Origin: Phallusia mammillata
Lineage: Eukaryota
Direction: 5' to 3'
Assembly: GCA_965637545.1 (NCBI GenBank)
Contig: OZ281496.1
Coordinates: forward strand, 24,118,001-24,182,000
DNA length: 64,000 nt
Below are positions 1 to 64,000 of this stretch, piece by piece; position 1 is the stretch's first letter, and each line of letters begins with the position of its first letter. The notes beneath the pieces were generated by a model. The model had not been told where the DNA came from, did no database searches, and worked only from the letters and a program-made list of their open reading frames with translations. The translations under genes and the position numbers were made by a program.

Positions 1-1003
1 TCTTGTTATTGGCTATACTCTTGACCTGACGGTATGTGTTGTTCCGCAAGCACACAAACGTTAAAGCATCAGAAGGGATCACTTTATTTACAGACACACG
101 TAAATAAAAAGAGTGTAGGAAGACGGCAGGTGGCGCAACAGGGTTCCAAAAACTAAAAATCGTCACGGCAGCGACGCTCCTCGTTTCGTGTTTTCAACTA
201 GTGTTGTAACGAAATATTGAAAAACGGATCTTGTGTAGAAAAATTGTCAAAAAGTACAATCAATCAAATATGGCGGTAACATAAAAGAAAAGGCAAAAAA
301 ACTTAACATAGCTGAGTTACACATATGCTATTATTGTTGGGAGTAGACTGATGTTGGGTTTGTGGCTTTAACGACAGCAAATGAGTGTATTTCAACCAGC
401 CTTTAAGATGTAAATATTCAGTTTTAGCACCTTTAAATTTTTAGATTTGAAACCTATTTAAATAGACGTGAGTATATATTGTTGTTGTGCACAAATTGGT
501 TTATGAATTGTTGACGAAGTTCCCTACTCGATGAACCATTCCAGAGAATCGCAATAAGCGCTAAATAACTAGCCCAACAATCAACACTGGCAATAGCAAA
601 GGTGCATTTGACATTAAATAGTCAAACATTTTTCTGGTAAAAACATTATAGGAACGGTGCAGGTGTCGTCTAAATCGGATGCAAAAATTTACAGTGCTGT
701 AAAAAGTCATAAAACAATCTTTTAAAGGTTTACCGTAATTGGGGTGTTAATAGCGGCGGTTAACTGGAAGGTGCTAAAATGTGTTCGGGTTGAAAGGGCG
801 GTCTCCAATCTAGAGGCATTATCAGTTTTTTATTTGCATGTTTGCCAAAGAGAAGCTATAAAAACACACAATGGGGAAATTCCTAGTTGCTTTTCAACTC
901 AACAACAAAATCAACAAAAAAGACGTTCTGTGGTTTTTCTTTAGGCCGTTGTGTCGAAGTCCGTGTTAAGGGATTTCTAACTACTCCTTTATCAATTTTT
1001 TCC

Positions 1004-1009
1004 TTTATT
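1004..1009 (-). promoter_or_regulatory. Candidate polyadenylation signal (AATAAA) for GULP1
   Basis: TTTATT on the plus strand at 1004-1009, about 330 nt downstream of the GULP1 stop codon. Position only. Confidence 0.35.
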
Positions 1010-1340
1010 AAATCATATTACAAACTAACGAAACTTTAAGGTTATAGAAATTAATTTTTGGTTCCAAGTTTATGCCCAACGAAAGGTTTGGATACTGGTT
1101 TAATTGCTAGCCGTTGAAACCAGCGGTAAGGTCACGTTTTTAGATCTACTTGGAGGCTGTTTTTCCCGTTAGCGTGGTTCGTAAATTTGTCACCGACAAA
1201 CAAATAAATCGTTGTAGCACTTTGAAGAAGACAGAGTTCATAGCAGCACTGTTGGATTCGACCATTGCACCACTAAAGAAATTTCACACAGTATATTCCT
1301 TCCCGCGATGTAACCAATAATAACTTTACAACCTTCTTGA

Positions 1341-4300
1341 TTACTTCAGTGGATCAAAAGAGTCCAGAGTAATTTCGGGTTGCAATATTTGCATTGTCTG
1401 TTTCATGCTGTCCTCCTGAAAAAAAAACTTTACGTTCAATTTTTTTCAGAGCTAAACTTTAGTATACGACTGTCGTTTTTTTGTCGTATTATGTGCTGGT
1501 TGTTTTTGATAGTGGGTAAATGGTTTTAATGGTTATCGTTGGTATGGTCGACTACAGTTGATCGTGTTTGACTGTTGTAGGTTTTTTTTTGTCCCAATGT
1601 TGTTTCTTACAACAACAAAAGTTATCAGTTATGTATAGTTTAAAAATGTATGCTATTGGCCTTCGTTTCACTAAGTAAAGTAGAAGAGAGTAAGAGCAGA
1701 AGTTTTAAAAGGAAAGAAAAATCGTAATAGTACTTTTGCTATTCTTTGTCTGGTCAGACGTTTTCGATCGTCTACTAGTTCTTTGGTAGTAGAATTGGAA
1801 TCATATTGTCTTGGTTGCGAGACGGGTTTCATCTGAGATAGTTTGTTTTCTTCTTGCATTATCCATGCCAGCTTTGACGACCTCATTATCTTCCGAAGAA
1901 TCTCACTTTGGTTCTCGTAGTTCTCTTCAGGCTGATGTGATGTTATAAGTATGGTGACAAGAAAAAAGAGAGATTGAGTTTAAAGTTTACTTTCCGAAGA
2001 AAAAAACATAGAGTATTAGATTAGGTCCATAAAATGTCTTAATAATCAGGAGGTATAAGAATTGGAAAAAGGGAAAGGAGACAAAGAAGAAAGTTGACAT
2101 TGTGATAACGCTCAGATTAGTATTTTATGTTTTCACCTAATTTATCAAGCCTTTCGGTTTGGCCTTTCACGCATTTAGTTTTCCACTCCTTATTGTCTTT
2201 ACCCGAATCTTTTGATTATTTTTACCTTTATTGTCACGTCAGGTTGAGAAAGTTGGATGTTTAAACGTGTAAGCTCACCGAGTGGATCGTCGAACAGCTG
2301 CTTTCCTAGATCTAAACACAAAAAAGTTTGTTGGAAAACAAGTAAAACAGCCAGTGCAAATTATGCTAATTGCTTCATGATTTGGGTGCCGAACCAACTT
2401 GTGTTATAATTTTTGAACACGAAAGGCTCGATGAAACAGAACACTTGTATGATATAATTCATAAACCTCTTTAGCTTCAAAGTCTAGTTTAAATGCTTGT
2501 AATGCTACTTGGCACTGACAAAGTTCACATGCACATAAAATGGTACCACGCGTTTCACATATACCGTTTTGCTGCTTGCTAGCCCTTCGCTTTGGTGTCC
2601 TGACAGGATGAACTTCGTCAGGGGACGGAAGGCGAATTATCGGGGATCCATTTTTGGTCGTTTTTGTTTCACCTCCGAACGGTTGCATATCGAAAGCATC
2701 ACGTGACTGCTTTGTCTAAAAATTGGCCAAAAGTTTATTGGGTTTGTTCTATGGAATTGCTATGACACAAGGTCAGTCTTTTACATTTCTGCAGTACAAT
2801 GCTAAATTACCTTTAAATGGTATTTTCAGTGTTATGTTAAGAAATGAGAACACAGAAGAAGTGTTAAAAGAGACCAGTTGTATAAAGTGCTTAAAAGAAA
2901 AAAAAACGTTGAAGTTTATGGACAGGTTAGGCAAGAAAGTACCGATTTTGAAGAACGTGCAAGTTTCTTATCGTGGTGAGGCTTAGAATAGGAAGAAGAA
3001 GCAGGCAAAGGTTTTTCTGATGTAGAAACAGAAGGTTGGCTTAACTTCTCTGCTTCTGTAAGTATATCAATCAAGTCTTGCCCATCCAAATCATCAGCAG
3101 TGACTTGATGTTTCGAAGCTTTCCACTTGCTTTCGTAACTCTTCAGCCAAGTATCCTGCTTTGCATCTTTACGTACGGACTTCATTAAACTATGTACAGT
3201 ATCATAGGTTGAATCTACGTTTTCCGATTCGTCTTCAAATGATGTTTCAGCCACTTTTCTTGCTTCTTTTAACAAGAGATAGCCGTCTTCGCCTGAAAAT
3301 CGGTCCAAAGTTGAATCCAGTACCGACACTGGAGCACCAGTTGGCCGCGAGTTTTTGCTTTGTACAGCATCAAGTGATTGTTGTCTAGGTAGATTCTTGC
3401 CAGGATCGGGATTCATATAAAGTGAACCTTCCGGTGATTCAAAACAGTACGAATGCACGCCTTGTCTATCCGTAGACGAACTAACGTCGCTACTCGTTGC
3501 CGAGTAGATTGACAACGAACCCATAGAAGAAGACTTTGCACCTAAAGAGTCGTGGAGAAATTGTGGAGGCTTCGGAGGAATTGCTGGGTGGTCACGTGGT
3601 GGAAGAGCAGGAGGAGAGTCCGATTTATTTTCATCTGGCATCATATGCTTGTATTTAGCCTGAATCTTTGCATATGATACATTCATGTAGCTTCGATCGG
3701 AGGCCGCATCATCAATCACAGTTTCATGCATGTCAGATAAGAACGTTTGGTCAGCGGTGGACGGTTGTTCAGGTTCTGCACAAACCCGGTTGTTTTCAAC
3801 CCTACCACCTGATGAAGTCCCTGGTGTGTCACTGATCATCGATTGCAAAGTTCCAATCACTTCATTGAATCCTGTGTACAGGCTTGAAGCACTATTGCGT
3901 CGCCCAACAGGCTTCTCACTTGTTTGTGACTCACGTTTGATCATGGCTGGAGGCAATGAGTTATGCTGATTGGCTCTTAATTCCTGTTGTTGTTTTTCAG
4001 TTTCATCCTTATTTTGTCCTTTACTTTTCGGCTTAGGTTGGGAAAGATATTTTGCTGCGCACTCTTGAATTTCTGATATTTTAGCATAATTGTCATCATC
4101 TTCTTCATCATTGCCATTTAGAGTTGGGCCAGGCACCTGGTTTTCTGGCTTTTTAATTGATGGAGATCCTGCATCTGACTTATGCTTCTTACGCAACTTC
4201 CTCTGATTGACAAAATCTTTAAGATTTTTGAGAGAAGCTTTCGCTCTTTCAACGGAGGCAATTGTCTGGTCAATGTACGCTTGCTTTTGTATTCGTTTTG

Positions 4301-7300
4301 CTGGGGGCAAGTTTGGAGAGTTAAACCTCGATTCCAAATACTTCTTGCTGATTGGTGAGTTTGAGAGGGCGGGGTCGTTGAAGATGTTTAAAAGGTCATT
4401 CGAGGTTGCGTATTCGCTTTCACTGCTCGATTGCTCACTGAGTGAGACTTGGCGAACAGGATACTTAGATGCTGATTTTCCTGGGATGTTTGAAGTTGAG
4501 GTTGTGGCCTCTAATATATCTACGTCTTCCTGTTTTGGCGAAGGACCGTGGAAAAGAAACAAAACAGATTGTAAAAGAAGGTGTAGTTAAAAGAAAGAGG
4601 TATAGTTAAAGGGAAAGTTTGTGGTATTGACAAAAGTAATTAAAAAGAGAAAAAAAGCAAAGAAAAAGGGAAGTTTATGAACAAACTAAAAATGTATAAA
4701 TGGCGATTGTTATTTTCATGTGTATTTAGATGGAAGAATTTTGGTGTCAACCTCTATTTAGGGTTATATTGAATGGAACTTTGTATACTGTGTTTCTAAT
4801 TTCTTACACTTACGGTTTTGGTCGGAGTATAAACAGTTCTGGCAGGGGAAGTCCCGAGCGATGACGGTGGGGATTTCCCGGTTTCAAGTTGTGCAATTCT
4901 TCTCTTTAGTTTTGCATTTTCCGTCTCCAGTTCAACGATTCTTTTGTTCAGATCGACGACCTGACAAAAACAGAAATGTTTTAGATGTTTACACAATCTA
5001 TGTATTACATACTGTACTACGTGAAACTATTGTGACGCGCGTTCTTGCACTGGTTATCGTACAAGATTATAGTTTTCTTCCTTTTATGTGCATCATATTG
5101 GGCCTAAATTAGAGATGTCTTACTGTTTGGAGTATCATATTGGAATATTAGATTATTGTTTTTTTTTCCTGTACGGAACATCGCATTGGTGTAGGCTTTT
5201 TTCCTATTTAGAGTTTAATATTCAAACTTTAAACGGATGTAACTACTTATTTTTCCCCATCTGCTTACCAGTAAAGTTGACTGTGCCTCTCAGGTGAATT
5301 TTATCGGGCTTGTTTTGTCAGTAAGTTCGTGTGTGTTGCCGTACTAGTTTGATTGTGTTTCTTCATACTGTTTTAAGTCATATATTTTCATAAACATTTC
5401 TATTCTTTTTATTTATGTGATTGGGAATGTTACGGTGGCCAAACGGCATGAGCAAAATTGCAAACTCCTCCCAACATTCGGAAATACCATTATCGGTGCG
5501 TCACATTCGCAGTGTTGTTTTGCGTATTTATTCGATTATAAGTCGCAGCTCATGAATTTTTTTAACCTACTGTTTGTGCGATCCAGCGCGGCTTCATATT
5601 TAAGTTATACCGATAATATTTCTACACCCATGCGATTTCGCATTTAATTAAATCCTTTTGCATGGCTTCACACGTCAACATATGCTCAGCTGGGTACAAT
5701 TATTTGCGAAGCTAAGAATTTTTTTTTGCTGCCAGGCATAATATCAAGTATATAGAGCTCTTCTGGCACAGATAATTTTATTCCTTCATGTCAACGTACT
5801 TTCTGATGGTAGAAAGCACGTCGGGTCCATACAAACCTTTCAATGAATAAAATTACATTTGCCAGAAGTGCTCTATAAACTTAAGGCTAAGAATTTGTTG
5901 ATAAAAGTATTATTAAACAAAAGTACCAGACATAAAAAATGCAACTTACAATCAAGTAAATACGGTAACAACAATGACGAAATAGTTGTTGGATACAGTC
6001 ATTAACGATTCAAACTATTTGGGAAGTAAGCAAATCATAATAAAATGTGCAGCTTATGGCATTTTTGTCTGATAAAAAAATGATTCAGCCACAGGGAAAT
6101 CCTTTGGCCAAACGACCACGACCTTCATAAGCAATTCAATACATTAATGGCAATTGGCGCAGCTGCAAGGCGACGCATTGAACAAAGTCAAAGTCGCTCA
6201 GTCACTCGCACAAGAACTAGGTGGTACGTCCTTTGGCCAATTGCAGCCTTTCTAGCTCCTATTGCCAGTTCCGTGTATTTTGCCTGGCTTTACCTAGAAC
6301 CGGCTTGTATTGAAAAGGAGTGTGGGCGTTTGAATGGCAACGGATTTGTAGCTCTGACGTAACATGTCATCACGGTTGTTGTCTGCATTGAGGATGTTTT
6401 TATGTGTCACCTCCTGTTGGAATTTTTTTTCAAATTCTTTAATGTTTGCTGCGGTCAGAAAGGCACCGCTGTTACAGGCTTTTAATTGTCAAGTGATATA
6501 TAGGTAAAAGTGAACATAAAACATTTAAAAAATATTTTATTGTCTGCCTTATTCCTTTTCTTCTAACAGTTGACTATGATAAGCAAAATACGTTTTAGTA
6601 ACGTTATTTTCTCCTCTGCTACAAGCTTACATCTGTTTGAACCAGACACAAGGTCTTGCGTAATGAAATGTCCCTTAGGAAATGCGAGAGTCAAAATAAT
6701 TTGCCATATGATGACGTCATGCAAGATCAATGCAACCACAGGGTTAATGTGTATGAAACCCTATTGACAATTGGCATTGCTGCACAATGTTATACGGTAG
6801 TGAAAACACATTACCTTAGCTAGCTGTTATAAAACAAAGAATATATGTAAACAGTGAACGTGTTATGCTGCGTACAGCTGCGTGTTTAATGCTGATCTTT
6901 TTCGCATTACGTAAGAATGCCGTAGCGAATTGTATAGCCTGATATATATGGCTGTAATGGCGATGAATGCATTTAGGAATATTTCACAGCTCATGATATA
7001 TCATACAGAGACATGTTAAGATACGAAAATGTAAACGTCACCTCATACGAACAGTACAGTTGTGTTAGTGAGACCTTTCACGGTTTTGCACTTGATGTAT
7101 TTTGTTGCTATGGTGACGAGGTCGGTTCATTTACTTGGTTACACCCAAAAACATGCGCTAAATGTCAACGCAGGAGCTATGGTGTTATAATATCGAATAA
7201 GCAAGCCAAGCATAGCAAATCTTTGTCATTTTTGTCTTTCAAACAGAATGATAAAACCAATGCGAAGTCTTAAAGCCAATTTAAACAAGCGTAAGAAATG

Positions 7301-17900: not shown

Positions 17901-18359
17901 TTTTGCACTGGTGAACACCAATAGGTAGAGAATATTTAAGTGTTAGGTTTGTTGTCAAGTTACCTAGCAATAAATGTAAGATCGATTTTCAAATTTACCG
18001 CAGGTTTTGAGAGGTTCTCACAGTTCGAGTTTAGCCTTACTCTGCTCCGACTGGAATGTATTATTACGGTCAAAGTTAATGAAAGGTTTGGAAAGCTGTA
18101 GTCATAACGTAACGAATTTGCAAAACTTTCTCTTGCAAATCCGAAATGTCCATTGGCTCAAATAAACGCTGTTAACCATTGAATAAGATAAGCAATTTAA
18201 AATAATATAATTTTACTGTGTACTGGAAAGTTTAAGTACAGTCTACTTGTGGCCACGCCTCCAAAATTCTCATTGCCCAATCGCCTATTCACGCGAAACG
18301 ACAGATGCCAAAATGTTACAACTGTTTATCCTTCAGCCTCCGGGCCTGAAGCCTTCCCA

Positions 18360-18610
18360 CAATGACGTAATGCATTTTCGCGCATGCGCGTGTGTGCTGC
18401 GCATTGCGCAAGTCACGTGGCGCCCGCGTTCTTGAAGGGCACCGAGGCGTAACCGACGCGTTCAGTTTTCAGGCAATTTTTTTAGCGATTCGGAATTTCT
18501 CGCCTGGTCTTTTGACGTGTTACGGAAGAAAGGTCACACGGCGTGAAAAGCACAGGCCACGTGTCAATTGCACGCTTTTGATTGGCCGATTAGCTGACCT
18601 CGTGACATAG
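18360..18610. promoter_or_regulatory. CpG-rich promoter/enhancer-like motif island
   Basis: TGACGTAA (18363), perfect palindrome CGCGCATGCGCG (18379-18390), TGCGCATTGCGCA (18398-18410), GTCACGTG (18412-18419), CACGTG (18558), and GATTGG (CCAAT box). Confidence 0.45.
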
Positions 18611-21600
18611 GGTGCTAAGAAGGTTGAGATTGTTTTGTTTATAATTCGATATGCGGTATAATTGGCCTAATTGCTAATAATGCTTACAGATGGTTCAAAC
18701 TTGCTGCTGTAAAACAGCTTACTTTACTCGTGTTAAGTTTATTTTGTATGGTAAAATCGTTTTAATAACTGCATGCTGTGGGATTATAGCGAAATGTGAA
18801 TGTTGAAAATAAGAACGTTTTTTTGTTACGAGCTTCTGCAAACAAACAATCAACTAAACGACGAAATACTTCCTATTTTAGTCGATGGGTAAATATTTGC
18901 GCCCTATACGAACACGTGATATTTGTGCAGGCAGCATCAGCTGCAAATCTGCAATGACCTGGTTGAACTGATAAACCCGCGAAAAATATCGAACTAAACC
19001 CAATTAACAATAATCTGAATGCGTTTGCATGTTTTAGTGTATTGGCGCCTTTTAGGTCCCAACAACGCCTCACTGTGTGGTGGTTGAACTGGTGGACTCT
19101 CAAGTAGCAGCCAATCAACTTGATATTGTACTTTATAATGTGATTTCATCGAATTCGACGTGGTTACAAGAGTAAAACATTTACCAATAATCCTACTACA
19201 CTATGGCACCATAAATCTTGTAACTTGCCCTAATTCCCATAGTTTTTGATTAAAGTTGTCAAATTTTGCTAGTCAAAGAGCCCACCGCAGTGAAAAAGAC
19301 TTTTCTTCGATTTAATAACAGTTTGCGTGTATTTTGAGGTTTTGACACTTTGGTCAAACGCAGAAATGCGAAATTAAAACACAAACAAGAGTCAAAACCT
19401 TTGCGTAACGGTTGAGGCCTGTGGGGAATTTTGTTACAGAGACCATGTAGAGGTCCCTGTCACGCACTATAACACCAAGAGGGGAAGCGTTTTCGGTTCT
19501 TCACCGACTGGGGTACAGTAAGGATGGCGCAACATGAACAGCAGATTCAGTGTTGCAATCGTAGCGTGTTTGAGATATTTGTGGTAAGGGAAACATGTTG
19601 ATTCGCACCACTGCGAAGAAATGGTTCCTTTCAACTGCAAAAGACCAGCTTGCGTTTTAAGTCCGGTTCGCTACTTAATTCCTCGAGTGGGCTTTAGCAA
19701 CGAGAAAATGTTAATTAAACGGTCGTGGCGATGCGCTTAAAAGGCAATGTGCGTCATTTGCGAGATTAAGCACACGCGTAAATTTCTACGTGTTTTTAGC
19801 TATGCTGATTTAAATGGCGAATTTAAATATTGTGTCAAATGCGAACAAATCTTGAATGCTGATTTACATTCATTTCATGGAAACAACAACAACTGAACAT
19901 ATTTTTATACTCGGTTAAACCACGTTCTGATCGTTGTTTTACAAAAATAATGGGATGTAACAAAAATAAGAGGGTGTTACAAATGCAAATTCGCTACAAA
20001 ACGTTCTAATTTCAAATCGGTGTGTATTAACATCTCTGAAACAACTTAATCAAAATATGCATACAATGTTAAAATGTAGTTAAAGTATACCAAATCTAGT
20101 ATGTTTATGAACCTAGTCTAGAACGTATGACATGAAATCTAGAAGTTTTTTAGAAAAAGGGGGAAATTACTAAACTTTTGTTTTTTTTAAAAAAGATGGC
20201 TGATTGCCTTTACATTCGAGCTTCGTGTTAAAAGTGCGTAACTTGTTTGTTTCCACTCGCAACGTGACTTGGTTTCAAAACAGTATCACTGGAGACAAAA
20301 CACACCACAAAATACCGGTAACTTTTTCTACGCAGCGGCAAATGGTCGTTTCTCTTTTCATAAACCTCTTTGCACCGAATTGGACGTGTCGAAAGCCACA
20401 AACTTCGCAGAAATATTGACCGTTGGAAGTTTTGCGCTTCGTGTGTTACTGCAAGAGCCGCAATGTTTTGGTAACTTAATCCAGGAGTAACGACAAATTT
20501 ACTGCGTAGAACTGTTGATGTTTATGTGTCCACTTTGTGAACCCACAAATCTCATTGAAATCGTGACCACTGTCACAATGCCACAGAAAACTTGTTGTTT
20601 TTCCTGCATAAGTATATTCTCAATAACGCATAGCACACTTATATGCGCATTTTAGGCTTTATTTTTGCATTTGCTTCTCGATTATCGCATTAAGAGGGCG
20701 TGCAAATGGGTTGAGCTTGTCTGTGGGTGATCACAATATGAATCGGGCAATTGGGCAAGTTCATAAATCCGATTATTCGATGTTTGGCATTTACAGTCTC
20801 GCCTTGTATACATTTGGTCGTGTGTGTTTACAATATACGTGAGCTTATTGCGCTGCTGTGGTGTTTTGCAATTAAGGCATAACTAAGGTTTTTGAGACCT
20901 TGCATATTTGAAACAGTGCTAAGTGTACTATAAATCGTACGACTGCAGTTCTGAAAAGCGAAACCTAACAAGAATGACAAAAATTTTATTACGCGAACTT
21001 TTTCACATCAAAAACCAACAATTATTTGCTGTTTGGAAGCTACGACTCATTCTGTATTTGGAGATATAAAAGTACACAACTCGTATTTGAAAATAAGTAA
21101 AATTGTTCACAGAATAAACGGGAGGCTTGTAATGACAAAATAAACCAGTAGTTTTAGAAAGAAAGTGTGTTTACTGTTTTTGAGTGTTCAAATTTGAACT
21201 ATTTTTGCAAATGCAATGATTAATTGTAAAAACTGAACAAATATTCTTTAGGGCATTTTCAGCAAAATTCTCAAGTGATCAATAACTTATTTTGCCTTGA
21301 AGGTCTTCCCCGTGTTGTTTAACAACATCTCCGCATCTGACTTTGTGTTTACACACTCGGTAATCGGTATAATTAGAGTCCAGCGCACGTACGTTCACCA
21401 GCTCCTTGATCTTTTCATCCAATTTCCTCTCTCGTTGACCACCGGGGTTGATCTATTTGCTGCTTTGTCAACGCCCATAATAATGCCTGCGAAGCGTTAA
21501 TACAGACGGTGAGAATTTTTTTTCGCATGGTCTTTAGAATTAATTCTCCAAGCTTCACCTCTGAGTTGGAGATAATTCTATTAATGTGAGTTGGTGCGTG

Positions 21601-21827
21601 AAATTAGGGGTTCGGCATTGTGGCTGAGTTTCCGACGATGATTCAGAAGTTCGGTTGGGTGTGTTGTTACAGGTCTTTGGTCTTTTGTGAACATTATTCT
21701 ACTATTTAGGAAGGATTATAAATATTTAAATAATTTTTCTTTGTTATGTTGTGTTATTCAGCGTCAAATGTAGCTTGAGTTAGTTTTGTTTTTGTTTTAT
21801 CAAGTAAAACGATTTTAGCACCAAATC

Positions 21828-22009
21828 GAGTACTGGGATTCAGCCGGTTCGCACCGGTTCTATAGAACCGTCTCACGAAATTTTATGAAATCAGTGAACC
21901 GGTTAGCATTACTAGTTGCTGTCAATGGATTATTTATAACAGAACCGGCTAAAAAATATGACTTTTGTGATAGTACCAGCTGAAAAAAAAAATTTGAATC
22001 CCACCACTG
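21828..22009. mobile_element. hAT-type MITE (182 bp)
   Basis: TIRs GAGTACTGGGATTCA / CAGTGGTGGGATTCA (12/15); 8-bp TSD ACCAAATC at 21820-21827 and 22010-22017; internal (A)CCGGT(T) repeats. Confidence 0.85.
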
Positions 22010-25000
22010 ACCAAATCGTATGTATGTTGTAGAATGTTTTTGACATCAGCAATATTAGTAGAACTAAAACCATACAACTTAACACCTGTGTACTGAAACG
22101 ATTTTACATAGCGCAGAGTAACTTCAATCCTTATTTGTAAAATTAAGACTTGGATAAGTTCACAAACGTCAGAAACTAGATTAAGGCATGCTTCAAGCCA
22201 ACAAAAAATCAATAGGAATGAGGTTGATTGGGGATCTTTGGCTTCGTTGTTATCATTTTTCACATTAACAAAATTATCATATGGTCAACAATCTTGAGTA
22301 GGGTTCATTAAAATGTAATCGATAGTATTGATTTGCCTTCGGATTTGTGCTAGGTGATTAATATATGCATGTTGGTGGCGCGAACTTGTGCTGGATATAA
22401 TGGCATGAATTTCGAATACGCAACGTTTAGCAAACTTTTACTTGGTAAACTTTAGTGAAAGCATTGGGTTAAGCCTATACTTCAAATTGCAAATTTGTTC
22501 AAAGTGATGTGAATGCCAAAATCTTTTGTATTCGACAAAGTATTTTGGTTTTGTGGTGTGATTATATTGTACCTGATGAAGCAAACATTTTTCGCCATTT
22601 TAGCTGACTTACCCGCAATTTGCAATTAATAAGTATATCGCTAACCAGGACGTTGGAACCAATGATCAAAGTAAAAAAGACAAACGTTGTTATTACGCTA
22701 AACGTTTTTTGGATTTTTCTGATTCCCTATTATACTGTGTGGCTAAAATAATACCCCGGCTGTACAAGTAGATTGTAATCTCTCAGCAATACTCAACTGT
22801 TATCCAAACATTTACGCGGTTTTACTGTTTGAAGCTTTGTCAGAGGAACTAAGTACTCAACTGCAATGCTTATAATATCACATTGAATATGATTCACATC
22901 GTTTCGCAGGTGCGAATATAATTCACCGGTGATCCTGCACCGCCCAGAGTTTGTTATTTTAGGGGCACAAGGGCGGAATAATTTCATAGCCCCATATTAT
23001 GTTACCGTGTCCGGCAGTCGTATGGCATATCATAAGGAATACAACATAAACTAAGGATATACTTCAATACCTTTATTATAGACCGGACAATACAGCTCGC
23101 GATCATACGTCGCCCCTCGCTATTGTGTAGCTATTGAAGCTGACATTCCTCGAGCGTCGTGAGAAAAGATTGCGATCCCCTTTGGCTGCACTGTATGTGC
23201 CTGGGCATGGCTAGTTCCGTTGCGTATCAACCCCGAATTGTGAATGGGTTGTTGGCTTCGGCGAGTTCCTCGGCTGTGGGAACGGAATGTTCAGCTGATT
23301 TGGCTCGTTGTTTGCTTTCCGGATTTTGTGTTGTAAGTTTTATTCAAGTCACAAACGTGACAAGCTTTCTGCAACGCGAATTCCAGAAGTTCCGGATGTA
23401 TCGAAGAATTTACTAAGCTTAAATTGAATGTAGAAATCGTTTACTTTAGGAACTTTACTGCATACTATTTAATTTGCAGATTTAGTCAGTTAGGAACACT
23501 ATACACGGACTTGAAAATTAATTTAATCATAAACATTACTGCCAAAGTACTGGTGTATATAGAAGTTAGAATGTAGAACAAATTTGCAGACTTTTTAAGA
23601 AGGAAATGTGTTTTAAGTTTGTATTAGTATAGCATCTATCTATATGTAGGTATTGGGTGTTGTTTTGAGAAAACTCATTTGTCTTTGACTTATAAATTGA
23701 TATCATTAGACAGGCATCATTAAATACTTTCGTTTGACGGTTTCATGTGATATATTTCATCACGCCATACATAGGGCACACCCCCTGTCATTGGCTTGTA
23801 CATCAGACAGATGACATCCCATCAGGATTTAAAATGTTCCAAATAGTTTCCGCTGTTCACGGATGTGGTGGATATGCAAATTGCATGTGGTCAGGTCAAG
23901 GTCATGGCCAATTTGTGAATGTATATTGCCGGATCCGTTCATGATCGACCGCAAGTGCTCGGTGTGGGAAATGCAAATTGCGTGGCTTCTTAAATGGCAT
24001 GGATCGGGCAACACGTCGAGCTATTTCAACTTTTTTAAATGATCGCTTAGTCTGTAATCATACTAAAATATTAATATAAATGGTGGTGAAAAAATCCTGA
24101 TCAATTTGGCCTTACTTTTCATGAGTGTAAAGGTTTCCAATCACGCGTATAACAAACACACCGTCCCCGATTTAATGTGAAATATACTAATCAAACATTT
24201 GACTTTTACCACGGCGAGCTTGTATTTACAAAATTGTGTTTAGGGCTTTACAAACGTAAACGTTTACGCAAAACTGAGCTCTCTAAACGTTAAATACATG
24301 AAACTGGCGTTACAAAATGACAATAGAACACGGCGATAATGAAAAAGTGGTAACACAATCGTGATTGAACCCCCCCCCCTCCAAAGAAGCAATTCATTTC
24401 ACTAAGTTAGGCACGTTGGAACTGTGACGTAACGTCGCATTTTACCGGCTCCTCTATAGGCTTTGTTGCGCAGTGAAACCGACTTGTTGTTAGTCAAAAC
24501 TCGACTCATGTTACCAACCAACCAGTTGATAACACTGCTAACTCGGTGGGTTCCCATCAGGTCAGATAACGCTGCATTTTAGAACGCTTTGCCTCGGAGG
24601 ACAATGCACCCGGCGCTGTACGGGCCTTTAACTCGAAATGAAAACACGCGAGTGCCTTTGTGGCACTTTTCAACAGCTGATGCCTTGAATGGAGTCGGGC
24701 TGTCCATTAAAAACTGACACACACTTGTTTGCCGTGAGAAAGGAGCTGGGCCGTGTTTTGTGGCTCGGTGCTTTTGTGTTAAGTCTGCTGGCTCTGTTTG
24801 CTGCTAAATTAGGGTTTTATTGTAATTGCAAGCTATTCGAGTTAATGCTATCCCGCCTCGAGAAGACTACCTGCCGCGATTGGAACTAGGGTCATTTGGA
24901 ATAGTTATTGGGCACCTGCTAGGAGCTGTAAGTAGAAAAAAGTGTTTAATGAAGTGTTAAAATAAAATGCAACAACCAAATCAGTAGTCATAATTTTGTT

Positions 25001-28000
25001 TAAAGTTAGCAATAAGAAATGCGAAACTCAATAGTTCGACCGATTGCTCTAAATGTAGCTATGATTTATTATTCAAATTATTGTGCATTGCAAGGAGGGT
25101 GTGATTTAATGGAAAGTGTAGTTTGAAACAGTGACGATAATTTATTACGGGTAGTCGTAAACGTTAATTGCCAAACCCAAAGCAGTTTGCATTGTGACAA
25201 GGTAAAAATTGCGTTTTGTAAAGATTTACGAAGCGCAGTTTACACAGTAGAGATTTTTTTGGTCAAAAATAGATTAAGAAAAATTTAGATCGATTAAAAC
25301 TGAAACAATTCTGTTTTTAAAACCATGTCCAACAATTGATGGCGTTACTTAAGATTTTTTTTAGCAGCATATGTTATTCACGCTCACCTATTTGCGGTTA
25401 CCGCAGCAAAGTAGCACAGTGTGACTTCGTCGAAAGCATAGAAGTCTCCTCCTTCTTATCAATAATTTACGTTGAAGTATGAGATGATGTCCGGACGTTG
25501 TGGATTACAATGCGTTGGTTTCATGGGAGGTCGGTGTACGAAACCTGCGGTGAGATAAAGCGTGCAAATTAATTTTTTTCAGACATTTTTTCGGTGGTTG
25601 CAACATTAAAATTTGACGGGACTATATCGTTTTCTGCAGTAGTGTAAACAAACCATGGTATTTTGATACATAATGTAGATATTGATTGCAGTCTATAAAC
25701 TACAAGCCATCAATCGCATTATAATGTGACGTGTTGTTACAAAGCACGTTGCACATAAAACCGAGCCATATGCGACTAAACTTAGTTTAAGACACATTTT
25801 CAACCATTGTTGCATTGATCGAAAACAGTTTTAACGGCCAACTTAATTTGGCGAAATTTTAAACAACCCAGGCTCAAATGTATTCAGGTTATTTCGTAAG
25901 GCATTGGCCGCTAAGCTGGTTGCTTTAAACTTCAACAAAGTTTATCGTTTCATCTTATTTACTGCGTCAGTTGGGCGGTCTATGCCGTCAGCAAGTCACA
26001 ATGTTTTTCTCGGAAGCCTTACTACAGAGTTGATAGCCTGTTGACTTGACAAGTTTAAAAGTTAGCGAGTCGCCTCGGGGACCAAACCGCTTGTTGAGAA
26101 AAGCGCAGTTCGTTGGCAACAACTTCTCGCCTATTGGCTCAGTGCCAAACGTAGTGCAGCCATTGCACAGTCAGCAAGAGTAAGTTTTTGAATCAGGTTT
26201 TTGCTTGTCTTAAGAGAAATGTAAGAAAAGATAGAGAACTTGTTTCGTTTTGTGACCAAGTAAAAATTATGGCTACATTGCCGATATCGGTGATATGATA
26301 AAGTATAATTGCAGATTTGTATAGTTGATGTGTAGTTGCAGACTTGTGATGCTGAATGTACAATGTGTGCTAAAAATAGCAAATTGGTATTGCTGCCGCA
26401 TATGGAAATGATACCGTATCGTACTGGTACGATATATTTTCATATCGCTCCCAGGTTATTATGCGATAACAGAAAGTTATTTGAAAGTAATTTCAGGCAA
26501 TGTTTGACAGGCAATGCTTTCAGAGTTGACTTACACAAAAGCAATTGCTTTGAGTCTTTATGCCATTAACAATACGCAAGGTGTGCTGTGGTTAATAAAC
26601 TACTCTTGGTGGGTAGAAATAATGGTAATTTACGTTCTGTTTAGCATTCAGTTAAAGCTAGTAAAGAATACCACAGGTGTGTAGCATAACTATATGGAAA
26701 CAAAACGCAAATTTTGATCCTAATTTCGCTACTTTTAATGGCATCGTGCGAACAAAAGGTGTGTCAAAGAAAAGGTTGCAAACATTATGACAAGGGAAGG
26801 TCTCATTATGCCTGACCTAGAGCTAAATTAGTGGGGCGTATGTTCATTAGCTAGGTACAGGTGCTAATCAATCGAGGCGACAAATCCAGAATCGATTTTG
26901 AACTCAGTTTGAATCGGCGAGATTTTGAATTGATGGAATCGATATGGCATCGATTGACACATGTACAATTGCTTGCGGAAAGGTTTGGGCTAAGCTTTAG
27001 CTTTGCAATGGTACCTTGTGCAAATCCTACAGTGTTATAAGGCTTCACTGTAGCCTTTGAAGTGTGATGGTGTGGATTTACGAAATGGTTTCGGGACTGT
27101 GTTTTTCTGAGTTGAAATATAGGCCTGTTGATGTTGAAAGGGATTTTAGTAGCGTACATTTTAAACATATACAATGCTTGCAACGAGTTAACTTCTTGTT
27201 TTCCCAACAATAATGTAAATATAATGACAGGGCCATATAAATAAAGTACCCGTTGCCGCTTGAAAGCCTATGTGTTCATTGAATGCCGAGTTTGTTTTTG
27301 TTAGATTGTTTTTGTTTTATTTTTGCGTTTTATTTTTCATCAGTTAAATTTCAACAATTTGTTTTTATGTCCATGCTTTTCATTTTAGTGCAATGCAGCA
27401 ACAACAGACTTGTGTTGCTTAAGTGCGAAGTTGTTTCTTACAACTCGTGTCAATTGTTGGCATATAGCGAAAAGGTGGCAACTAGCACTGGGCGTTGTAA
27501 ACAACGATCCCGTGTCCACGTAGTGTTTTGCAAACGAGTGGAGAAGATTTATGACCGAACGATAACAAATGCAACTATCTATTGTTGGCGTAGAGTTGAG
27601 AAAAGGGGCGTCTTCCAATTTCGCAGAATCACTAAAAGATTTTCTCACATTATTTTTCAAATCATGTTTGCTTCAACGTGTGTGTGGTAAAAAATTGGAC
27701 AGCGAACAATTAGGACCAGGCCTGTTGGCACCAGTAGGTCGGCTGCTGGCTTGGATTAATATGTTTAGCGTTGGACGTGTTTAGGCATTCCTTTGCGGCT
27801 TATATGAGATGATTTGGCCTTAGTAGTGTCGTCGTAAGGTGAAGACAATAACTCGGTCTGTGACATATCACGAAATTCGAATTTGCCTAATATCGTCGCT
27901 TTAACCTTAAACTTTGTCCAATTTATATTTGGGAGGTTGTTAATTTTGTTTTGTCGCGTGGAATGGTATTAATTTAGAGTGTAAACGTGCAATTAACTAG

Positions 28001-57222: not shown

Positions 57223-57414
57223 GGTAATTGGTAGTTCAAGACCAACGTTTTAAAAATATGCTGGGGTTTTGTGCTTTTGTCCTTTGGCAGCAGCACGCAG
57301 TCGTGACTCGCGATTACAAAAGGGTTCCAAAATAACCATTGTCATTCTGCCAGAATAAAAACGAAAAAAGGAATGCGAAACGAGAGAACGTCACAGATGG
57401 ATGCGCAACGAACG

Positions 57415-59767
57415 TTTTGGCCAAATCGAAATATTGACAAAATACGCAAAATTTAATACAATTTTTGAAATCTTTTCGGGCCCATTATTTTTTTAAAATT
57501 CGTCACATTGCCTTATCTTTTAGTCTATTTTAATAATCCGTTTTCGAAAAACTGAACCCGACTCGATAATTAGAGCAAAACGCAATTAACTAACACCCAC
57601 TTTGGGCCAAATGCCGAAAGTGACGAAATACGCTAACTTTATTACAATTTTTGAAATCTTTTCGGGCCCATCGTTTTCTTTAAATTCGCACCATTGCCTT
57701 ATCTTTTAGTCTATTTTTACAATCCGTTTTCAAAAAAATGAACCCGACTCGATAATTAGAGCAAAACGCAATTAACTAACACCCACTTTGGGCCAAATGC
57801 CAATAGGGACGAAATACGCTAAGTTCGATACAATTTTTGAAATCTTTTCGGGCCCATTATTTTTTTAAATTCGCACCATTGCCTCATCTTTTAGTCTACT
57901 TTATTAATCCGTTTTCAAAAAAGTGAACCCGACTCGATAATTACAGCAAAATGCAATTAACTAACACCCTCTTTGGACCAAATGCCGAAACTGACGAAAT
58001 ATGCTAAGTTCAATACAATTTTTGAAATCTTTTCGGGCCCATTATTTTTTTTAAATTCGCAACATTGACTCATCTTTTAGTCTATTTTATTATTCCGGTT
58101 TCAAAAAAGTGAACCCGACTCGATAATTACAGCAAAACGCAATTAACTAACACCCTCTTTGGACCAAATGCCGAAAGTGACGAAATACGCTAAGTTCAAT
58201 ACAATTTTTGAAATCTTTTCGGGCCCATTATTTTTTTTAAATTCGCAGCTTTGCCTCATCTTTTAGTCTATTTTATTAATCCGTTTTCAAAAAAGTGAAC
58301 CCGACTCGATGATTACAGCAAAATGCAATTAACTAACACCAACTTTGGGCCAAATGCCAATAGGGACGAAATACGCTAAGTTCGATACAATTTTTGAAAT
58401 CTTTTCGGGCCCATTATTTTTTTAAATTCGCACCATTGCCTCATCTTTTAGTCTACTTTATTAATCCGTTTTCAAAAAAGTGAACCCGACTCGATAATTA
58501 CAGCAAAATGCAATTAACTAACACCCTCTTTGGGCCAAATGCCGAAACTGACGAAATACGCTAAGTTCAATACAATTTTTGAAATCTTTTCGGGCCCATC
58601 GTTTTCTTTAAATTCGCACCATTGCCTTATCTTTTAGTCTATTTTTACAATCCGTTTTCAAAAAAGTGAACCCGACTCGATAATTACAGCAAAATGCAAT
58701 TAACTAACACCCACTTTGGGCCAAATGCCAATAGGGACGAAATATGCTAAGTTCAATACAATTTTTGAAATCTTTTCGGGCCCATTATTTTTTTTAAATT
58801 CGCAGCTTTGCCTCATCTTTTAGTCTATTTTATTAATCCGGTTTCAAAAAAGTGAACCCGACTCGATAATTACAGCAAAATGCAATTAACTAACACCCTC
58901 TTTGGGCCAAATGCCGAAACTGACGAAATACGCCAAATTTATTAAAAATTTTGAAATCTTTTCGGGCCCATTATTTTCTTTAAATTCGCACCATTGCCTC
59001 ATCTTTTAGTCTACTTTATTAATCCGTTTTCAAAAAAGTGAACCCGACTCGATAATTACAGCAAAATGCAATTAACTAACACCCTCTTTGGGCCAAATGC
59101 CGAAACTGACGAAATACGCCAACTTTATTAAAAATTTTGAAATCTTTTCGGGCCCATTATTTTCTTTAAACTCGCAACATTGACTCATCTTTTAGTCTAT
59201 TTTATTAATCCGTTTTCAAAAAAGTGAACCCGACTCGATAATTACAGCAAAATGCAATTAACTAACACCAACTTTGGGCCAAATGCCAATAGGGACGAAA
59301 TATGCTAAGTTCGATACAATTTTTGAAATCTTTTCGGGCCCATTATTTTTTTAAATTCGCACCATTGCCTCATCTTTTAGTCTACTTTATTAATCCGTTT
59401 TCAAAAAAGTGAACCCGACTCGATAATTACAGCAAAATGCAATTAACTAACACCCTCTTTGGGCCAAATGCCGAAACTGACGAAATACGCTAAGTTCAAT
59501 ACAATTTTTGAAATTTTTTCGGGCCCATTATTTTTTTTAAATTCGCAGCTTTGCCTCATCTTTTAGTCTATTTTAATAATCTGTTTTCAAAAAAGTGAAC
59601 CCGACTCGATAATTACAGCAAAATGCAATTAACTAACACCCACTTTGGGCCAAATGCCAATAGGGACGAAATACGCTAACTTTATTACAATTTTTGAAAT
59701 CTTTTCGGGCCCATTATTTTTTTAAATTCGCAGCTTTGCCTCATCTTTTAGTCTATTTTATTAATCC
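57415..59767 (+). repeat. 186-bp tandem array (~12.5 units), left arm of the foldback element
   Basis: The anchor TCTTTTCGGGCCC (once TTTTTTCGGGCCC) recurs at 57471, 57657, 57843, 58028, 58214, 58400, 58585, 58771, 58957, 59143, 59329, 59514 and 59700. The last unit is cut at 59767. Confidence 0.97.
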
Positions 59768-59773
59768 CAAAGC

Positions 59774-62700
59774 ATGCAAACGAAGACCGCTGTTAAAGAG
59801 TACAGAGAACTTTACGACCAAATGGAACCGGAAGAACGTTGGTTAGGTGCGCACACATATCTGCCGTCCCAATCTGTATTGAATAATATTAAAAGTGAAG
59901 GAAGTCTAGGTCGCCGAATAAGCAAATTGTGGTACCTAAATACTTTACGCTTAGAAATGGAAAAGGAAAGCCAATACTTTATCAGACACATTTCTGTTCA
60001 TCCGCCAATGGTCGTAATGTATTCCGATGCGCAGGTAAAAACTTTCAATCAAATTTGTGTTTTTGATATTGCGTACTACGATTCGACAGGAAGCATTTTG
60101 CGACGTTTTGAAAATTATTCCGACTTTCAGGTGTACACCTTATTAATTACAAACCCAACACAAGGTGGAACTCCCCTTCCCGTAACAACATGTGTCAGTT
60201 GTTTACATGATGCAAATACAATTAGTCATTTGCTGAAAAACTTTTTGTTCGACGTGGCTAAAATTTGTGGTCGTGCTAAAAAACCATCGCTAATTGTAGT
60301 TCATGGGTCAATGGCTATGTGGAACGCTGCATTGAAAGCGATATTGCATGAAACGCGATTAGACTTTTACAACCGCTGTTTCAAAATTGTGACCGGGAGA
60401 TTTGACGAGGTTGACTTGACCAAAACTATCTTTCATAATTGCTACAGTCATGCCATGAAAGCTGCCAAGTGTTTATGCCATAAATACAGCAATAAGCGTA
60501 AAATCGTTACAACTTACTTGTTTTGTATTAACGTAATGTTTTCATGCACGACGCTACCTGAACTAGATGAGGTCGTAGAAAGTTTTTACATTTTGACAAA
60601 CTGTAAAAAAACCTCTGCGTTGGTTGAAAAACATTTTAAACGCCTTCAATTATTTCGGCTACGGGACTACACCGACGATGGCAATGGTAAGAACGGCAGC
60701 GACGATAGCACTGATTATTTTTATGCTTGCAAGTCGTCCGACAGATTGCAGGAACGTCATTCACCGTTTTACGTTAGGTACAAAAATAACTTAGATAATT
60801 TTAATACTTCGCAGGTGTGCAAGGATCACATGTATACCAATTGCGACGAAAATGTTTATTGCAACCCTCAGTTGTGAGAGAAGGTACTGGAAATTATTTT
60901 AAGTAGAATTTGCGCAACCTCGCAGTTAATGCTTGGAGATTTAACTCGGCATGACACAAAAGGCAATCTTTCAAGCGAACAACTTGATGCGTACGAAGCA
61001 TTTTTCAAAAAGTGTGAAATTTTGCAACAAGCTGGTCACCAAACTATTATGGTAAACAATCAAACTCAAGGTATAATTGAAGAACATTTCGGAGACATGA
61101 AAGTTAATTTTATTGATGGCAAGCGTGTAGGGCGAATTGACGACTTCGTGGTAAAATACTTCAACGCCATAAAGGTTTTACAAAAACAGTTCGCCGACTC
61201 TGTGCAACACCTTACAACAACTCCTAAAAAAGTCTCGAAAACACAATTGGTTCCGTTTACAACTTCGATGCCTATGGTTGTGTCTAGGTTTAAGAACAGA
61301 AAACGCAATGCGACCAGTTTTTACTCGTCACAAGGTTTCGTGAAACAGCTAAAATATCAAAATAAGGCAACTTCGTTACAGGACAGTACCGAAATGACAG
61401 ACACCCCAGTTATTCCTGCTTTCATATTTTGTCCCAATAATGACGATGTTGTTGCAACGTGTAAACCCGTAGCAGGTCTCGTTTGGAATAAAGTTCCTTT
61501 AAACCCAGTAACAATTGCAAATTCGGCTCTTGTTATGCCATGTAATCAAACGTTATCATGGCTGGATTTGTGCTCTATTTGTCCTAAGCCAATTGGTTCT
61601 ACGTACACAGCTTTGACGCAAAACGCATATAAGTCCCACTCCGATACAACGCTTGGTTGGTTAACAGACAAGGCTGTTGATCATTATATTGCACGAGTTG
61701 TTCGTCTTTGTAACTATTTTCGTGCTGATCAATATGGATACATCTCCACGTTATTGGCATCAGAAATTTTAAACGGCAAGAAATTTAAGAATATTCATAG
61801 GGCATTCAAAGAAATTGTTCGCAACGTTTTGACGTTTTTGCAAAAGAAGTGTTGTACTTCAGTAAACCCTGATAGAACTCTATCCTTACAATGTTTTTCG
61901 CAAACGTATCCTTACAAGTTAGTTTCTGTGGTAGTTCATATGGGATCTAACGTTGCATCTGGTCATTACGAGTGCTATAGATTTGATGAACCAGGATTAA
62001 CCCTCTTCAATGATAAAATGGTAAAACGGACATTATTTGAATGCGAAAAAGAAAACATTCTGACTGGAAGTTGCCTGTTTTTTAAAAAACGAATCGGCGG
62101 AGATGTTGACGCAATTGCCAAAACTCTAACTCCAACGACGTCAGTTAAAGTAATAGTTAGACGGCGACGTCACTGCAACTTGTCATCTGTTACAACGAAA
62201 GACATTGTTGTCAGCAAAGACATAGATCTACAGCAATCAGTTGACGACAATTTAATTCTGATTTCGGACTTTGAAAACCTACACTCAGAAACAAAAGAAA
62301 CGTACAAGTATATTGCTCACAGTCTGCATACAATTCTTTCCAAAACGTTTAATGAAGCCAAATGCTTACCCGAGTGTTATCGTATGTGTTTGTTTCATGA
62401 AAAGCGCAGAAGTGAACTGATTCGCATAAATCAAGAATTTAGGTTTTGTAAGGGTTTAAATAAAGAATGCCTTGAGAATGTTGTGCGCTTTGTTGATCAC
62501 AAATTCTGTCGTTCTCGCGTGCGGCAGCGTATTATTGGACAACAAATATTTAGAGAATCTTATGTGGGAAAAGAACTGAAATCTGAATATTCGCCATCAG
62601 GAAGTTTGATTTCTTCCGCGCTTGAAAATACTCCTTCTGATGTCAACTTGTTTTTAACCCACGTACTAAATTTGGAAGCTTATATACATGAAGGTGAAGA

Positions 62701-62788
62701 ATATGTCGTACGTAGAAATGGGTATGTCGACAAAAACTTTTCAATGATATTAAAAACGAATACAAATGTTGATCTTCGTATTAAATGA
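59774..62788 (+). pseudogene. MULE-type DDE transposase fused to Ulp1-like and USP-like protease segments; 5'-truncated, in-frame TGA at 60875
   Basis: ORFs 59774-60877 and 60929-62788 are in the same frame. Motifs: YYDSTGS (Asp 60080), LIVVHGSMAMWNA (expected Asp is His, 60302), CYSHAMK (CxxH, 60440), NNQTQGIIEEHF (Glu 61079), GWLTDKAVDHYI (Ulp1-like, 61658), YKLVSVVVHMGSNVASGHYECY…FNDKMV (USP His box, 61913-62023). Confidence 0.8.
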
Positions 62789-63104
62789 TTCCATCAAAAA
62801 ATTGCATGAAAAAAAATCGCATTGCATGAAAAAACTGCATTTCCATGTTACAATGTTGCGCTATGTGCATGCACTGCATGAAAGCTAGCAGTTTTATTTT
62901 CTTTGTTTGGACAAATAATTGGTCAGGAAATTGTAACCATAGCCCAAAAAACAACAGTACATTGTAATGGTTAAACTACTAAATTTGTCCAAACAAAGAT
63001 TTTATCTGCAAAAAATCAAACCACTACTACTGTCGGAACCTTGACGTTGGTGTAATGGCTTTCAACCAATACCGGCAAAATAAAAATTGTAGGCGAACAG
63101 GGTT

Positions 63105-63740
63105 AAAATAATAGGCCCTAAAAGATTTCAAAAATTGTAATAAAGTTAGCGTATTTTGTCAGTTTCGGCATTTGGCCCAAAGTGGGTGTTAGTTAATTGC
63201 ATTTTGCTGTAATCATCGAGTCGGGTTCACTTTTTTGAAAACGGATTAATAAAATAGACTAAAAGATGAGGCAAAGCTGCGAATTTAAAAAAAATAATGG
63301 GCCCGAAAAGATTTCAAAAATTGTATTGAACTTAGCGTATTTCGTCACTTTCGGCATTTGGTCCAAAGAGGGTGTTAGTTAATTGCGTTTTGCTGTAATT
63401 ATCGAGTCGGGTTCACTTTTTTGAAACCGGAATAATAAAATAGACTAAAAGATGAGTCAATGTTGCGAATTTAAAAAAAATAATGGGCCCGAAAAGATTT
63501 CAAAAATTGTATTGAACTTAGCATATTTCGTCAGTTTCGGCATTTGGTCCAAAGAGGGTGTTAGTTAATTGCGTTTTGCTGTAATTATCGAGTCGGGTTC
63601 ACTTTTTCGAAAACGGATTATTAAAATAGACTAAAAGATAAGGCAATGTTGCGATTTAAAAAAAAATAATGGGCCCGAAAAGGTTTCAAAAATCGTATTA
63701 AATTTAGCGTATTTTGTCAATATTTTGATTTGGCCAAAAC
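63105..63740 (-). repeat. Inverted copy of the 186-bp array (~3.4 units), right arm of the foldback element
   Basis: GGGCCCGAAAAG at 63299, 63485 and 63671, plus a degenerate copy at about 63113. Reverse complement of the left-array units. Confidence 0.95.
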
Positions 63741-64000
63741 GTTCGTTGCGCAACCATCCTTGACGTTCTCTCGTATCGCATTCCTTTTTTCGATTTTATT
63801 CTGGCAGAATGACAATGGTCCAAAATAATGTAATACGTTTGTTTACGAATACCATGACGTTTCAATTTCTATGCTTCGTCATCATTATTATGCAGTTTTT
63901 CAATGCAAGTGCGTTTTCAATGCATGCGAAGTATCTTAGCGCATTTCAAAAACTTTAAACGTTTTAAGGAATACCTTGGCCTCAGTAAAGAAGTATGCCC

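Follow-up and report, generated by a model that had tools for sequence, protein, structure and literature searches.

How does one transposon reading frame come to hold the beginning of one protease and the end of another? The question arises in a 64,000-nucleotide stretch of the genome of Phallusia mammillata (assembly GCA_965637545.1, contig OZ281496.1, positions 24,118,001 to 24,182,000), which we call the window and number from its first letter. A first-pass annotation, made from the letters of the window, had noticed a transposase-like open reading frame (ORF) in which the start of a Ulp1/C48 domain runs straight into the C-terminal half of a ubiquitin-specific protease (USP)/C19 domain, and had proposed that an in-frame deletion fused the two. 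We find that this region, 61600-62089, marks where about 330 codons were deleted, without a change of frame, from the inside of a single giant transposon gene. The whole explanation that we favour is a deletion scar in a foldback element whose parent gene codes first for a putative PHD finger and a DDE transposase core, then for the C48 and C19 domains and lastly for a tail, with putative roles for both proteases. We consider it highly probable.

The frame in question is ORF2 (60929-62788, forward strand, 619 aa). The protein strings quoted in the first-pass annotation all lie in it, on that strand and at the positions given for them. The motif GWLTDKAVDHYI occupies 61655-61690, within a GWL..D.YI helix that spans 61655-61693 (aa 243-255); NVLTFLQKK is at 61823-61849, the His-box stretch at 61913-61978, and SCLFFKK at 62069-62089. 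Compared with a Hidden Markov Model (HMM) of the tandem protease regions of 50 relatives, ORF2 matches in two pieces. The first, aa 199-298 (61523-61822, forward strand), matches HMM positions 3-98 at 41.7 bits and is an N-terminal remnant of a C48 (Ulp1/SENP) domain. The second, aa 306-385 (61844-62083, forward strand), matches positions 428-511 at 43.4 bits and is a C-terminal remnant of a C19 (USP) domain. The window copy thus keeps some 100 residues from the beginning of C48 and some 80 from the end of C19.

Each remnant can be placed in some detail. An HMM of the Ulp1 region alone matches ORF2 at 62 bits, and the W-L-x-D-x-x-I-x-x-Y substrate-binding helix of C48 is present in the window, aligning with HWLNDEVINFY of SENP2 by way of the relatives' profiles. 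The catalytic His, Asp, Gln and Cys of C48 are all absent from the window copy, HMM positions 99-427 being unmatched. The USP remnant matches the relative P0005 at residues 505-562 (BLASTP, E 1e-11), and the Pfam family UCH (PF00443) matches aa 307-369 over profile positions 167-239 of 254 (E 2.2e-7, 31.2 bits, cut-off 23.9). Of the USP catalytic residues, the window copy retains the His (H346 at 61964-61966) and the Asp (D362 at 62012-62014), and it lacks the Cys box, the QQD box and the zinc-ribbon fingers. Both halves of the earlier description, a Ulp1/C48 start without its catalytic core and a USP end without its Cys box, are therefore borne out. Judged from these residues, the window protein is a remnant and not a C48 member enzyme, and the window copy, which has a nucleophile for neither domain, cannot make either protease.

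Comparison with intact relatives gives the extent of the loss. Residues 1-288 of ORF2 correspond to residues 904-1207 of the relative P0168, and residues 296-587 to its residues 1544-1837. P0168 residues 1208-1543 are missing: where the parent type has 336 residues, ORF2 has about 7. The same gap is seen by local BLASTP against P0001, P0003, P0004 and P0178, and 329 positions of the family HMM are unmatched between the two ORF2 pieces. What was lost extends from just before the His strand of the C48 core through the Cys box, QQD box and fingers of C19, so that the cut begins shortly behind the first C48 helices and ends in the last third of C19. The HMM puts the junction at 61823-61843 (forward strand, aa 299-305) and BLAST at aa 289-295, for an overall interval of 61793-61843, which overlaps the 61790-61820 predicted for an in-frame deletion in the first-pass annotation. 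The USP remnant was placed by local BLASTP and by the HMM; a global MAFFT alignment of ORF2 with the relatives misplaced it. The further prediction that longer copies should hold the C48 catalytic motifs and the USP Cys box came true in the relatives, where both are found between the two fragments.

Copies from the same species tell a similar story at one edge of the junction. Among contigs assembled from public sequencing runs there are diverged ones, about 9% different from the window and found in the same runs as the contigs that match it, that follow the window over 61836-62116 and are then unlike it leftwards. Translated in frame, the 30-nt consensus of their loose ends at 61836 gives a strand of USP type (..LKRNV). 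By its reading, this is what a copy still holding the middle of the USP domain should show.

Two other accounts of the junction have to be weighed against a deletion. The junction might be native, the region being one compact domain whose likeness to two proteases is a chance resemblance of motifs. In keeping with that idea, a Pfam scan of ORF2 recognises the C-terminal part of USP alone and yields no C48 match. However, in every relative that covers the region the matched pieces are separated by another 330-360 residues, which contain the complete catalytic cores of both proteases; and both pieces exceed 40 bits against the family HMM, whereas the best of 1000 shuffles of ORF2 reached 9.0 bits. 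We regard a native junction as extremely improbable. Alternatively, the fusion might have been made by the assembly, through a collapsed or chimeric contig. In favour of this, the element is repetitive and multi-copy, and the public-run contigs are broken at a number of points. Against this, the junction is crossed by contigs identical to the window (X5 record 18, X6 record 26, and X18 records 12 and 13), which come from public sequencing runs of several independent studies. The contigs crossing 61790-61850 show 0-4 differences, with X5 record 18 spanning 61328-61991 and X6 record 26 spanning 60527-61991. Because contigs of independent runs cross it, the junction is real DNA, and an assembly artefact is hardly credible.

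The deletion scar lies in a gene that has suffered other damage. Upstream of ORF2 is ORF1 (59774-60877, forward strand, 367 aa), which holds the middle of a DDE transposase core and is truncated on its 5' side. The first 198 residues of ORF2 (60929-61522, forward strand) hold the end of the core and a linker, aligning with P0001 from residue 272, P0003 from residue 139 and P0168 from residue 904. ORF1 and ORF2 were searched separately and never joined through the stop. ORF1 aligns with P0001 residues 3-234 (40% identity, E 1e-55), and ORF2 aa 1-288 aligns by BLAST with residues 272-575 of the same protein. Because both align to single proteins, we read the two as one ancestral ORF. They share a frame, and the tblastn alignment continues across the region of the stop. 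The only stop dividing the ancestral ORF is an in-frame TGA at 60875-60877 (forward strand). The 17 codons between the ORFs resemble RICCTS..LMLGDLSRH of the relatives, and the TGA falls at a column that is Cys in the relatives. An intron between the two frames was considered and rejected: the sole GT..AG pair (60874-60925) would define an intron of 52 nt that leads into TAA.

The catalytic residues of the transposase are partly preserved. ORF1 has the first catalytic Asp (D103, 60080-60082) and a CxxH motif (60440-60451), and ORF2 has the conserved TQGIIE.HF helix with a candidate catalytic Glu (E51, 61079-61081). At the second catalytic position, the window has His (CAT, 60302-60304), in VVHGS where the relatives have MIDGS. 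Position 60302 is read as G, giving the Asp codon GAT and hence the residue of all the relatives, in the X5 and X6 contigs at all depth and in X17 at 5650/8247. The His is therefore a variant at a catalytic residue that is particular to the window copy or haplotype.

On the 5' side, the relatives carry about 520 extra N-terminal residues, including the putative PHD finger, that are missing from the window copy. An X17 contig is unlike the window upstream of 59769. A loose end at 59769 reads in frame as additional transposase. This supports a second, 5' deletion, one that joined the left arm of the element to the middle of the ORF, and fits a breakpoint at the boundary between arm and ORF.

The element itself is complete at its ends. 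A foldback-type DNA transposon insertion of 6,483 bp occupies 57336-63818 of the window. It is flanked by a perfect direct repeat of the 10-bp sequence TCCAAAATAA, at 57326-57335 on the left and 63819-63828 on the right, directly outside the inverted termini. The left arm (57336-59767, forward strand) has a unique terminus at 57336-57414 followed by 186-bp tandem units, for which Tandem Repeats Finder gives a period of 186, 12.6 copies and 92% matches over 57415/57435-59767. In the right arm (63105-63818, reverse strand) the 186-bp unit is repeated 3.3 times in inverted orientation (63105-63719), and the terminus follows. The two arms are in inverted relation with an 88-95% match, and the termini, which start at 57336 and 63818, agree with one mismatch when the first 40 nt are compared to the reverse complement of the right end. 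The trait typical of Rehavkus/Foldback-type elements, long inverted arms with subterminal tandem repeats, is thus present, and the 10-bp perfect duplication fits the 9-11 bp target-site range of the Mutator-like element (MULE) superfamily. Elsewhere in the 64-kb window, no further copy of the element, tandem array or tRNA was found. With its arms and target duplication intact, its frames long and interrupted by one TGA, and its N-terminus missing, the window copy is a young non-autonomous derivative. For any further movement it would depend on full-length copies as the source of transposase.

What the parent gene looks like can be seen in the relatives. The family was gathered by word searches plus one exhaustive search, which returned 255 representatives at E ≤1e-3, mostly fragments, from metagenome assemblies of the European Nucleotide Archive and from Logan. 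Five members are full-length: P0168 (1860 aa), P0178 (1927 aa), P0004 (2074 aa, from a TARA ocean metagenome scaffold), P0184 and P0185. These are 31-48% identical to each other and come from at least three different samples. Their domain order is the same throughout: putative PHD finger, DDE core, a region starting GWLS that holds C48, C19, and lastly a tail of about 200 aa preceded by a basic patch. On its contig, the P0001 gene runs as one ORF without interruption, and P0178 is likewise called as one gene of 1927 aa. In the DDE core of the relatives, the first Asp is in FDSTG and the second in MIDGSMAMWNA, followed by the CxxH motif and an invariant TQGIIEQHF helix that likely supplies the Glu. 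In the relatives the PHD finger (Pfam PF00628) falls slightly short of the cut-off (E 1.4e-4 to 2e-3); its Cys/His pattern is there, and P0185 is precomputed as a match. At the P0178 locus (L004), a giant foldback element is built like the one in the window: inverted arms of 213-bp tandem units, in 20.6 and 35.4 copies, surround the 1927-aa ORF. These arms (1-4383 and 18256-25784) are more than 4 kb and more than 7.5 kb long and run off the locus, and the arrays are far longer than those of the window copy.

The identity of the two protease domains was examined in the relatives. The C19 assignment is the simpler one. Pfam UCH matches P0003, P0005 and P0006 over the full profile (1-254) at E 6e-20 to 5e-25. 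An AlphaFold2 model of P0005 residues 40-570, made with 50 sequences, has a mean predicted local distance difference test score (pLDDT) of 90.4. Residues 240-530 of that model match USP12 and USP2 with VIA at Z 26.2 (root-mean-square deviation (rmsd) 3.1, 277-279 residues aligned), and with Foldseek the C19 model matches USP35, USP46, USP12 and USP1 at E 1e-19 to 1e-18. On the profile and the predicted fold, the second domain is a C19 protease domain with the thumb, palm and fingers of USPs. The identity of the first domain as C48 is visible by profiles and structure only. Pfam PF02902 (C48) reaches just E 0.006 on the relatives, below its cut-off. A profile of four sequences finds SENP2 at E 7e-4, and a profile of 24 sequences compared to the PDB finds SENP2 (2.3e-10), SENP1 (4e-8), SENP8 (6.5e-8) and yeast Ulp1 (1.4e-4); in these alignments the positions of His, Asp, Gln and Cys coincide. 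Residues 1-226 of the same model (P0005 residues 40-265) match SENP8 at Z 20.0 (rmsd 2.7, 198 aligned), Ulp1 at Z 19.6, SENP3 at Z 19.3, SENP5 at Z 18.5 and SENP1 at Z 18.1. The fold check that the first-pass annotation had called for, done here on the relatives, thus came out in favour of a SENP/Ulp1 fold and of a USP fold.

The catalytic residues of both domains are well conserved among representatives no more than 50% identical to each other. In the C48 domain, the His is kept in 22/23 representatives, the Asp/Asn in 22/26, the Gln in 24/29 and the Cys in 26/32. In the C19 domain, the Asn of the Cys box is kept in 25/28, the Cys in 27/29, the His in 17/18 and the Asp in all 16 of 16. Because these residues are kept across relatives that are 31-48% identical, we infer that both parental proteases are active.

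Downstream of the proteases is a C-terminal tail specific to this family. In the relatives (P0168 residues 1655-1860) it begins with a basic KRRK patch and continues with the motifs RH.LFLK, RKKLC and CNEYL..V.D.EA.IYY. In the window it lies at 62111-62788 (forward strand), as a basic patch and the domain of about 200 aa, kept but degraded, and aligns with P0003 residues 890-1115 and with P0168 up to residue 1837. An AlphaFold2 model of the P0168 tail is confident (pLDDT 86.5), but a comparison with PDB folds gave no match: the top hit had E 0.84 with Foldseek and Z 3.7 with VIA.

Assigning the transposase to a superfamily is less direct. The D, D, CxxH and conserved Glu helix are all present in the cores of the relatives. 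The MULE domain PF10551 appears in two of five cores below threshold (E 0.021 and 0.058, 14-16 bits, cut-off 27.6), positioned on the region of the second Asp. Pfam had no match to ORF1, and a profile of the transposase core compared to PDB sequences found no relative. Ulp1 on Mutator-type elements, to which the first-pass annotation had pointed, is on record (PMC2836005); membership of this element in MULE or NOF is not shown by a profile above threshold.

Several known elements resemble parts of this one. The foldback arms of Drosophila FB-NOF are made of tandem subrepeats and surround a large internal ORF, which is a likeness of architecture. "MULE-NOF" is a label in repeat-classification tools. 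In plant MULEs, the Ulp1 is often in a separate ORF. The Ulp1-carrying Mutator-like elements, namely plant KI-MULEs and the MuDR-type elements of Hydra and lancelet (PMC2836005), share a C48 domain with the present family and have it on a Mutator-type element; however, they have Ulp1 alone, whereas here a USP follows it in the same ORF. Rehavkus elements are MULE-related foldback elements with a single ORF, a PHD finger and minisatellites (PMC6446971; bioRxiv 10.1101/2024.12.02.626372). They share with this family long inverted termini with subterminal tandem or minisatellite repeats, and a target duplication of the 9-bp class (10 bp here). They differ in that published summaries give no protease domains for them and in their hosts, which are Arthropoda and Annelida; a PHD finger would be a further likeness if the sub-threshold matches in the relatives are genuine. 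The comparison is one of published descriptions.

Outside the Mutator-type elements, the transposase of Ginger1 (PMC2836005) is fused C-terminally to a deconjugating cysteine protease, as it is here. Ginger1 differs in having a transposase like the Gypsy integrase and in having OTU or Ulp1, "but not both"; here there are two in tandem, and the second is a USP and not an OTU. A role of the ubiquitin and SUMO pathways in transposition was already proposed by the authors of Ginger1 (PMC2836005). A stable link between a USP/UCH domain and a transposon protein is also on record for the Helitron-like HLE2 (PMC11417382) and for an IS5-like transposase of Trichomonas (cited in PMC2836005), and UCH, OTU and C48 domains all occur in Helitron-like elements (PMC11417382). 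Those systems use other transposition enzymes, and no C48 tandem in one protein is reported there. A C48 and C19 tandem on a transposase was not found described in the full-text literature searched, Repbase Reports lying outside that search. What is known, then, is single deconjugating proteases on transposons; the present family has two different ones in one ORF together with a putative PHD finger and a transposase. The role of the single ones (Ulp1 on Mutator and Ginger elements, OTU/UCH on Helitron-like elements, C19 on IS5-like elements) was never established, and two conserved proteases with a putative PHD finger and a transposase in one ORF make a sharper, testable case of mobile DNA manipulating the SUMO and ubiquitin systems of its host.

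What might the two proteases do for the element? In the parent, the proteases would work in the nucleus, in cis with the transposase. At the element, the C48 and C19 domains could strip SUMO (or NEDD8) and ubiquitin from factors of chromatin, silencing or repair, or else from the transposase. Heterochromatic silencing in animals depends on SUMO. We prefer the possibility that the pair would relieve SUMO-dependent transcriptional silencing and protect against ubiquitin-dependent turnover. We offer only tentatively the stronger proposal that intact members carry a two-enzyme counter-defence module, fused to a transposase that reads chromatin, which erases at the chromatin of the element those SUMO and ubiquitin marks on which silencing by animal genome-defence pathways depends. 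If this were true, animal transposons would encode an enzymatic system against silencing.

Other uses of the same enzymes are conceivable. They could serve transposition itself, by de-modifying substrates of the PCNA, FANCD2 or histone type for repair of the excision gap or the integration site, as Bao, Kapitonov and Jurka proposed for the Ulp1/OTU of Ginger1 (PMC2836005). The best structural neighbours of the C19 domain include USP1, USP12 and USP46, but other USPs score equally and the USP clades are not discriminated. We would call a repair role possible and leave it in doubt. Self-processing is another idea, with the proteases cutting the product of about 2000 aa into separate proteins in the manner of coronavirus PLpro, which has the USP fold, or of the adenain-type CE proteases. 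Viral PLpro chains do share the fold (Z about 13), and the product is unusually long. Yet the five full-length relatives have no conserved Gly-Gly between domains, the sole conserved GG being inside the DDE core, and we think self-processing quite unlikely. The protease segments might also be fragments of host genes captured by one lineage, in the style of Pack-MULEs, since MULEs are known for capturing sequence of their hosts (PMC8277862). We give little credence to that origin: the domain order and the catalytic residues are kept at 31-48% identity, in at least three samples and in one uninterrupted ORF.

Returning to the preferred reading, a deletion scar in a foldback element descended from a gene with two proteases, several points weigh against it or against parts of it. 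The full-length references are distant from the window copy (25-35% identity) and come from other samples. The breakpoints are approximate, and one deletion or several may lie behind them; the closer copies of the same species are contig ends only, and the two alignment methods put the junction 30-50 nt apart. The family is described here from DNA and predicted proteins, and the putative function of the proteases is read from residue conservation. Among SUMO, NEDD8 and ubiquitin, SUMO is the likely rather than the certain target of the C48 domain, SENP8 and Ulp1 being tied in Z. The parent element imagined in the first-pass annotation, with a transposase, a deSUMOylase and a deubiquitinase, is accordingly met in the relatives as far as the one-ORF architecture goes; that the first enzyme removes SUMO rather than NEDD8 is likely.

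The window copy has an interest of its own. It is a dated deletion derivative, in which it is the arms and not the proteases that are needed for persistence of the copy, and it marks the family as recently active in the Phallusia mammillata genome. Contigs of the public runs hold further internal-deletion variants, with joints that skip 244, 289, 236 and 2161 nt, located at window positions 60418-62580, 60762-61007/61052 and 61063-61300. The genome, or the population, may thus harbour a swarm of deletion derivatives. Contig depth of about 500 versus about 21 in X5, and 113 versus 7-9 in X6, hints at a multi-copy deleted form; depth is not copy number and was not relied upon.

Apart from the transposon, the window has an ORF of 548 aa at 2916-4562 on the reverse strand. 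It is unrelated to the element, matches no Pfam family at E ≤0.01 and has no meaningful sequence match in the PDB. As to the surroundings of the relatives, those in sample ERZ25067582 (L001 3564-5102 and L002 2398-5160) adjoin pol genes of long terminal repeat retrotransposons, with RVT_1, RNase H and rve domains. These contigs are repeat-rich eukaryotic DNA within an assembly labelled as a "metagenome".

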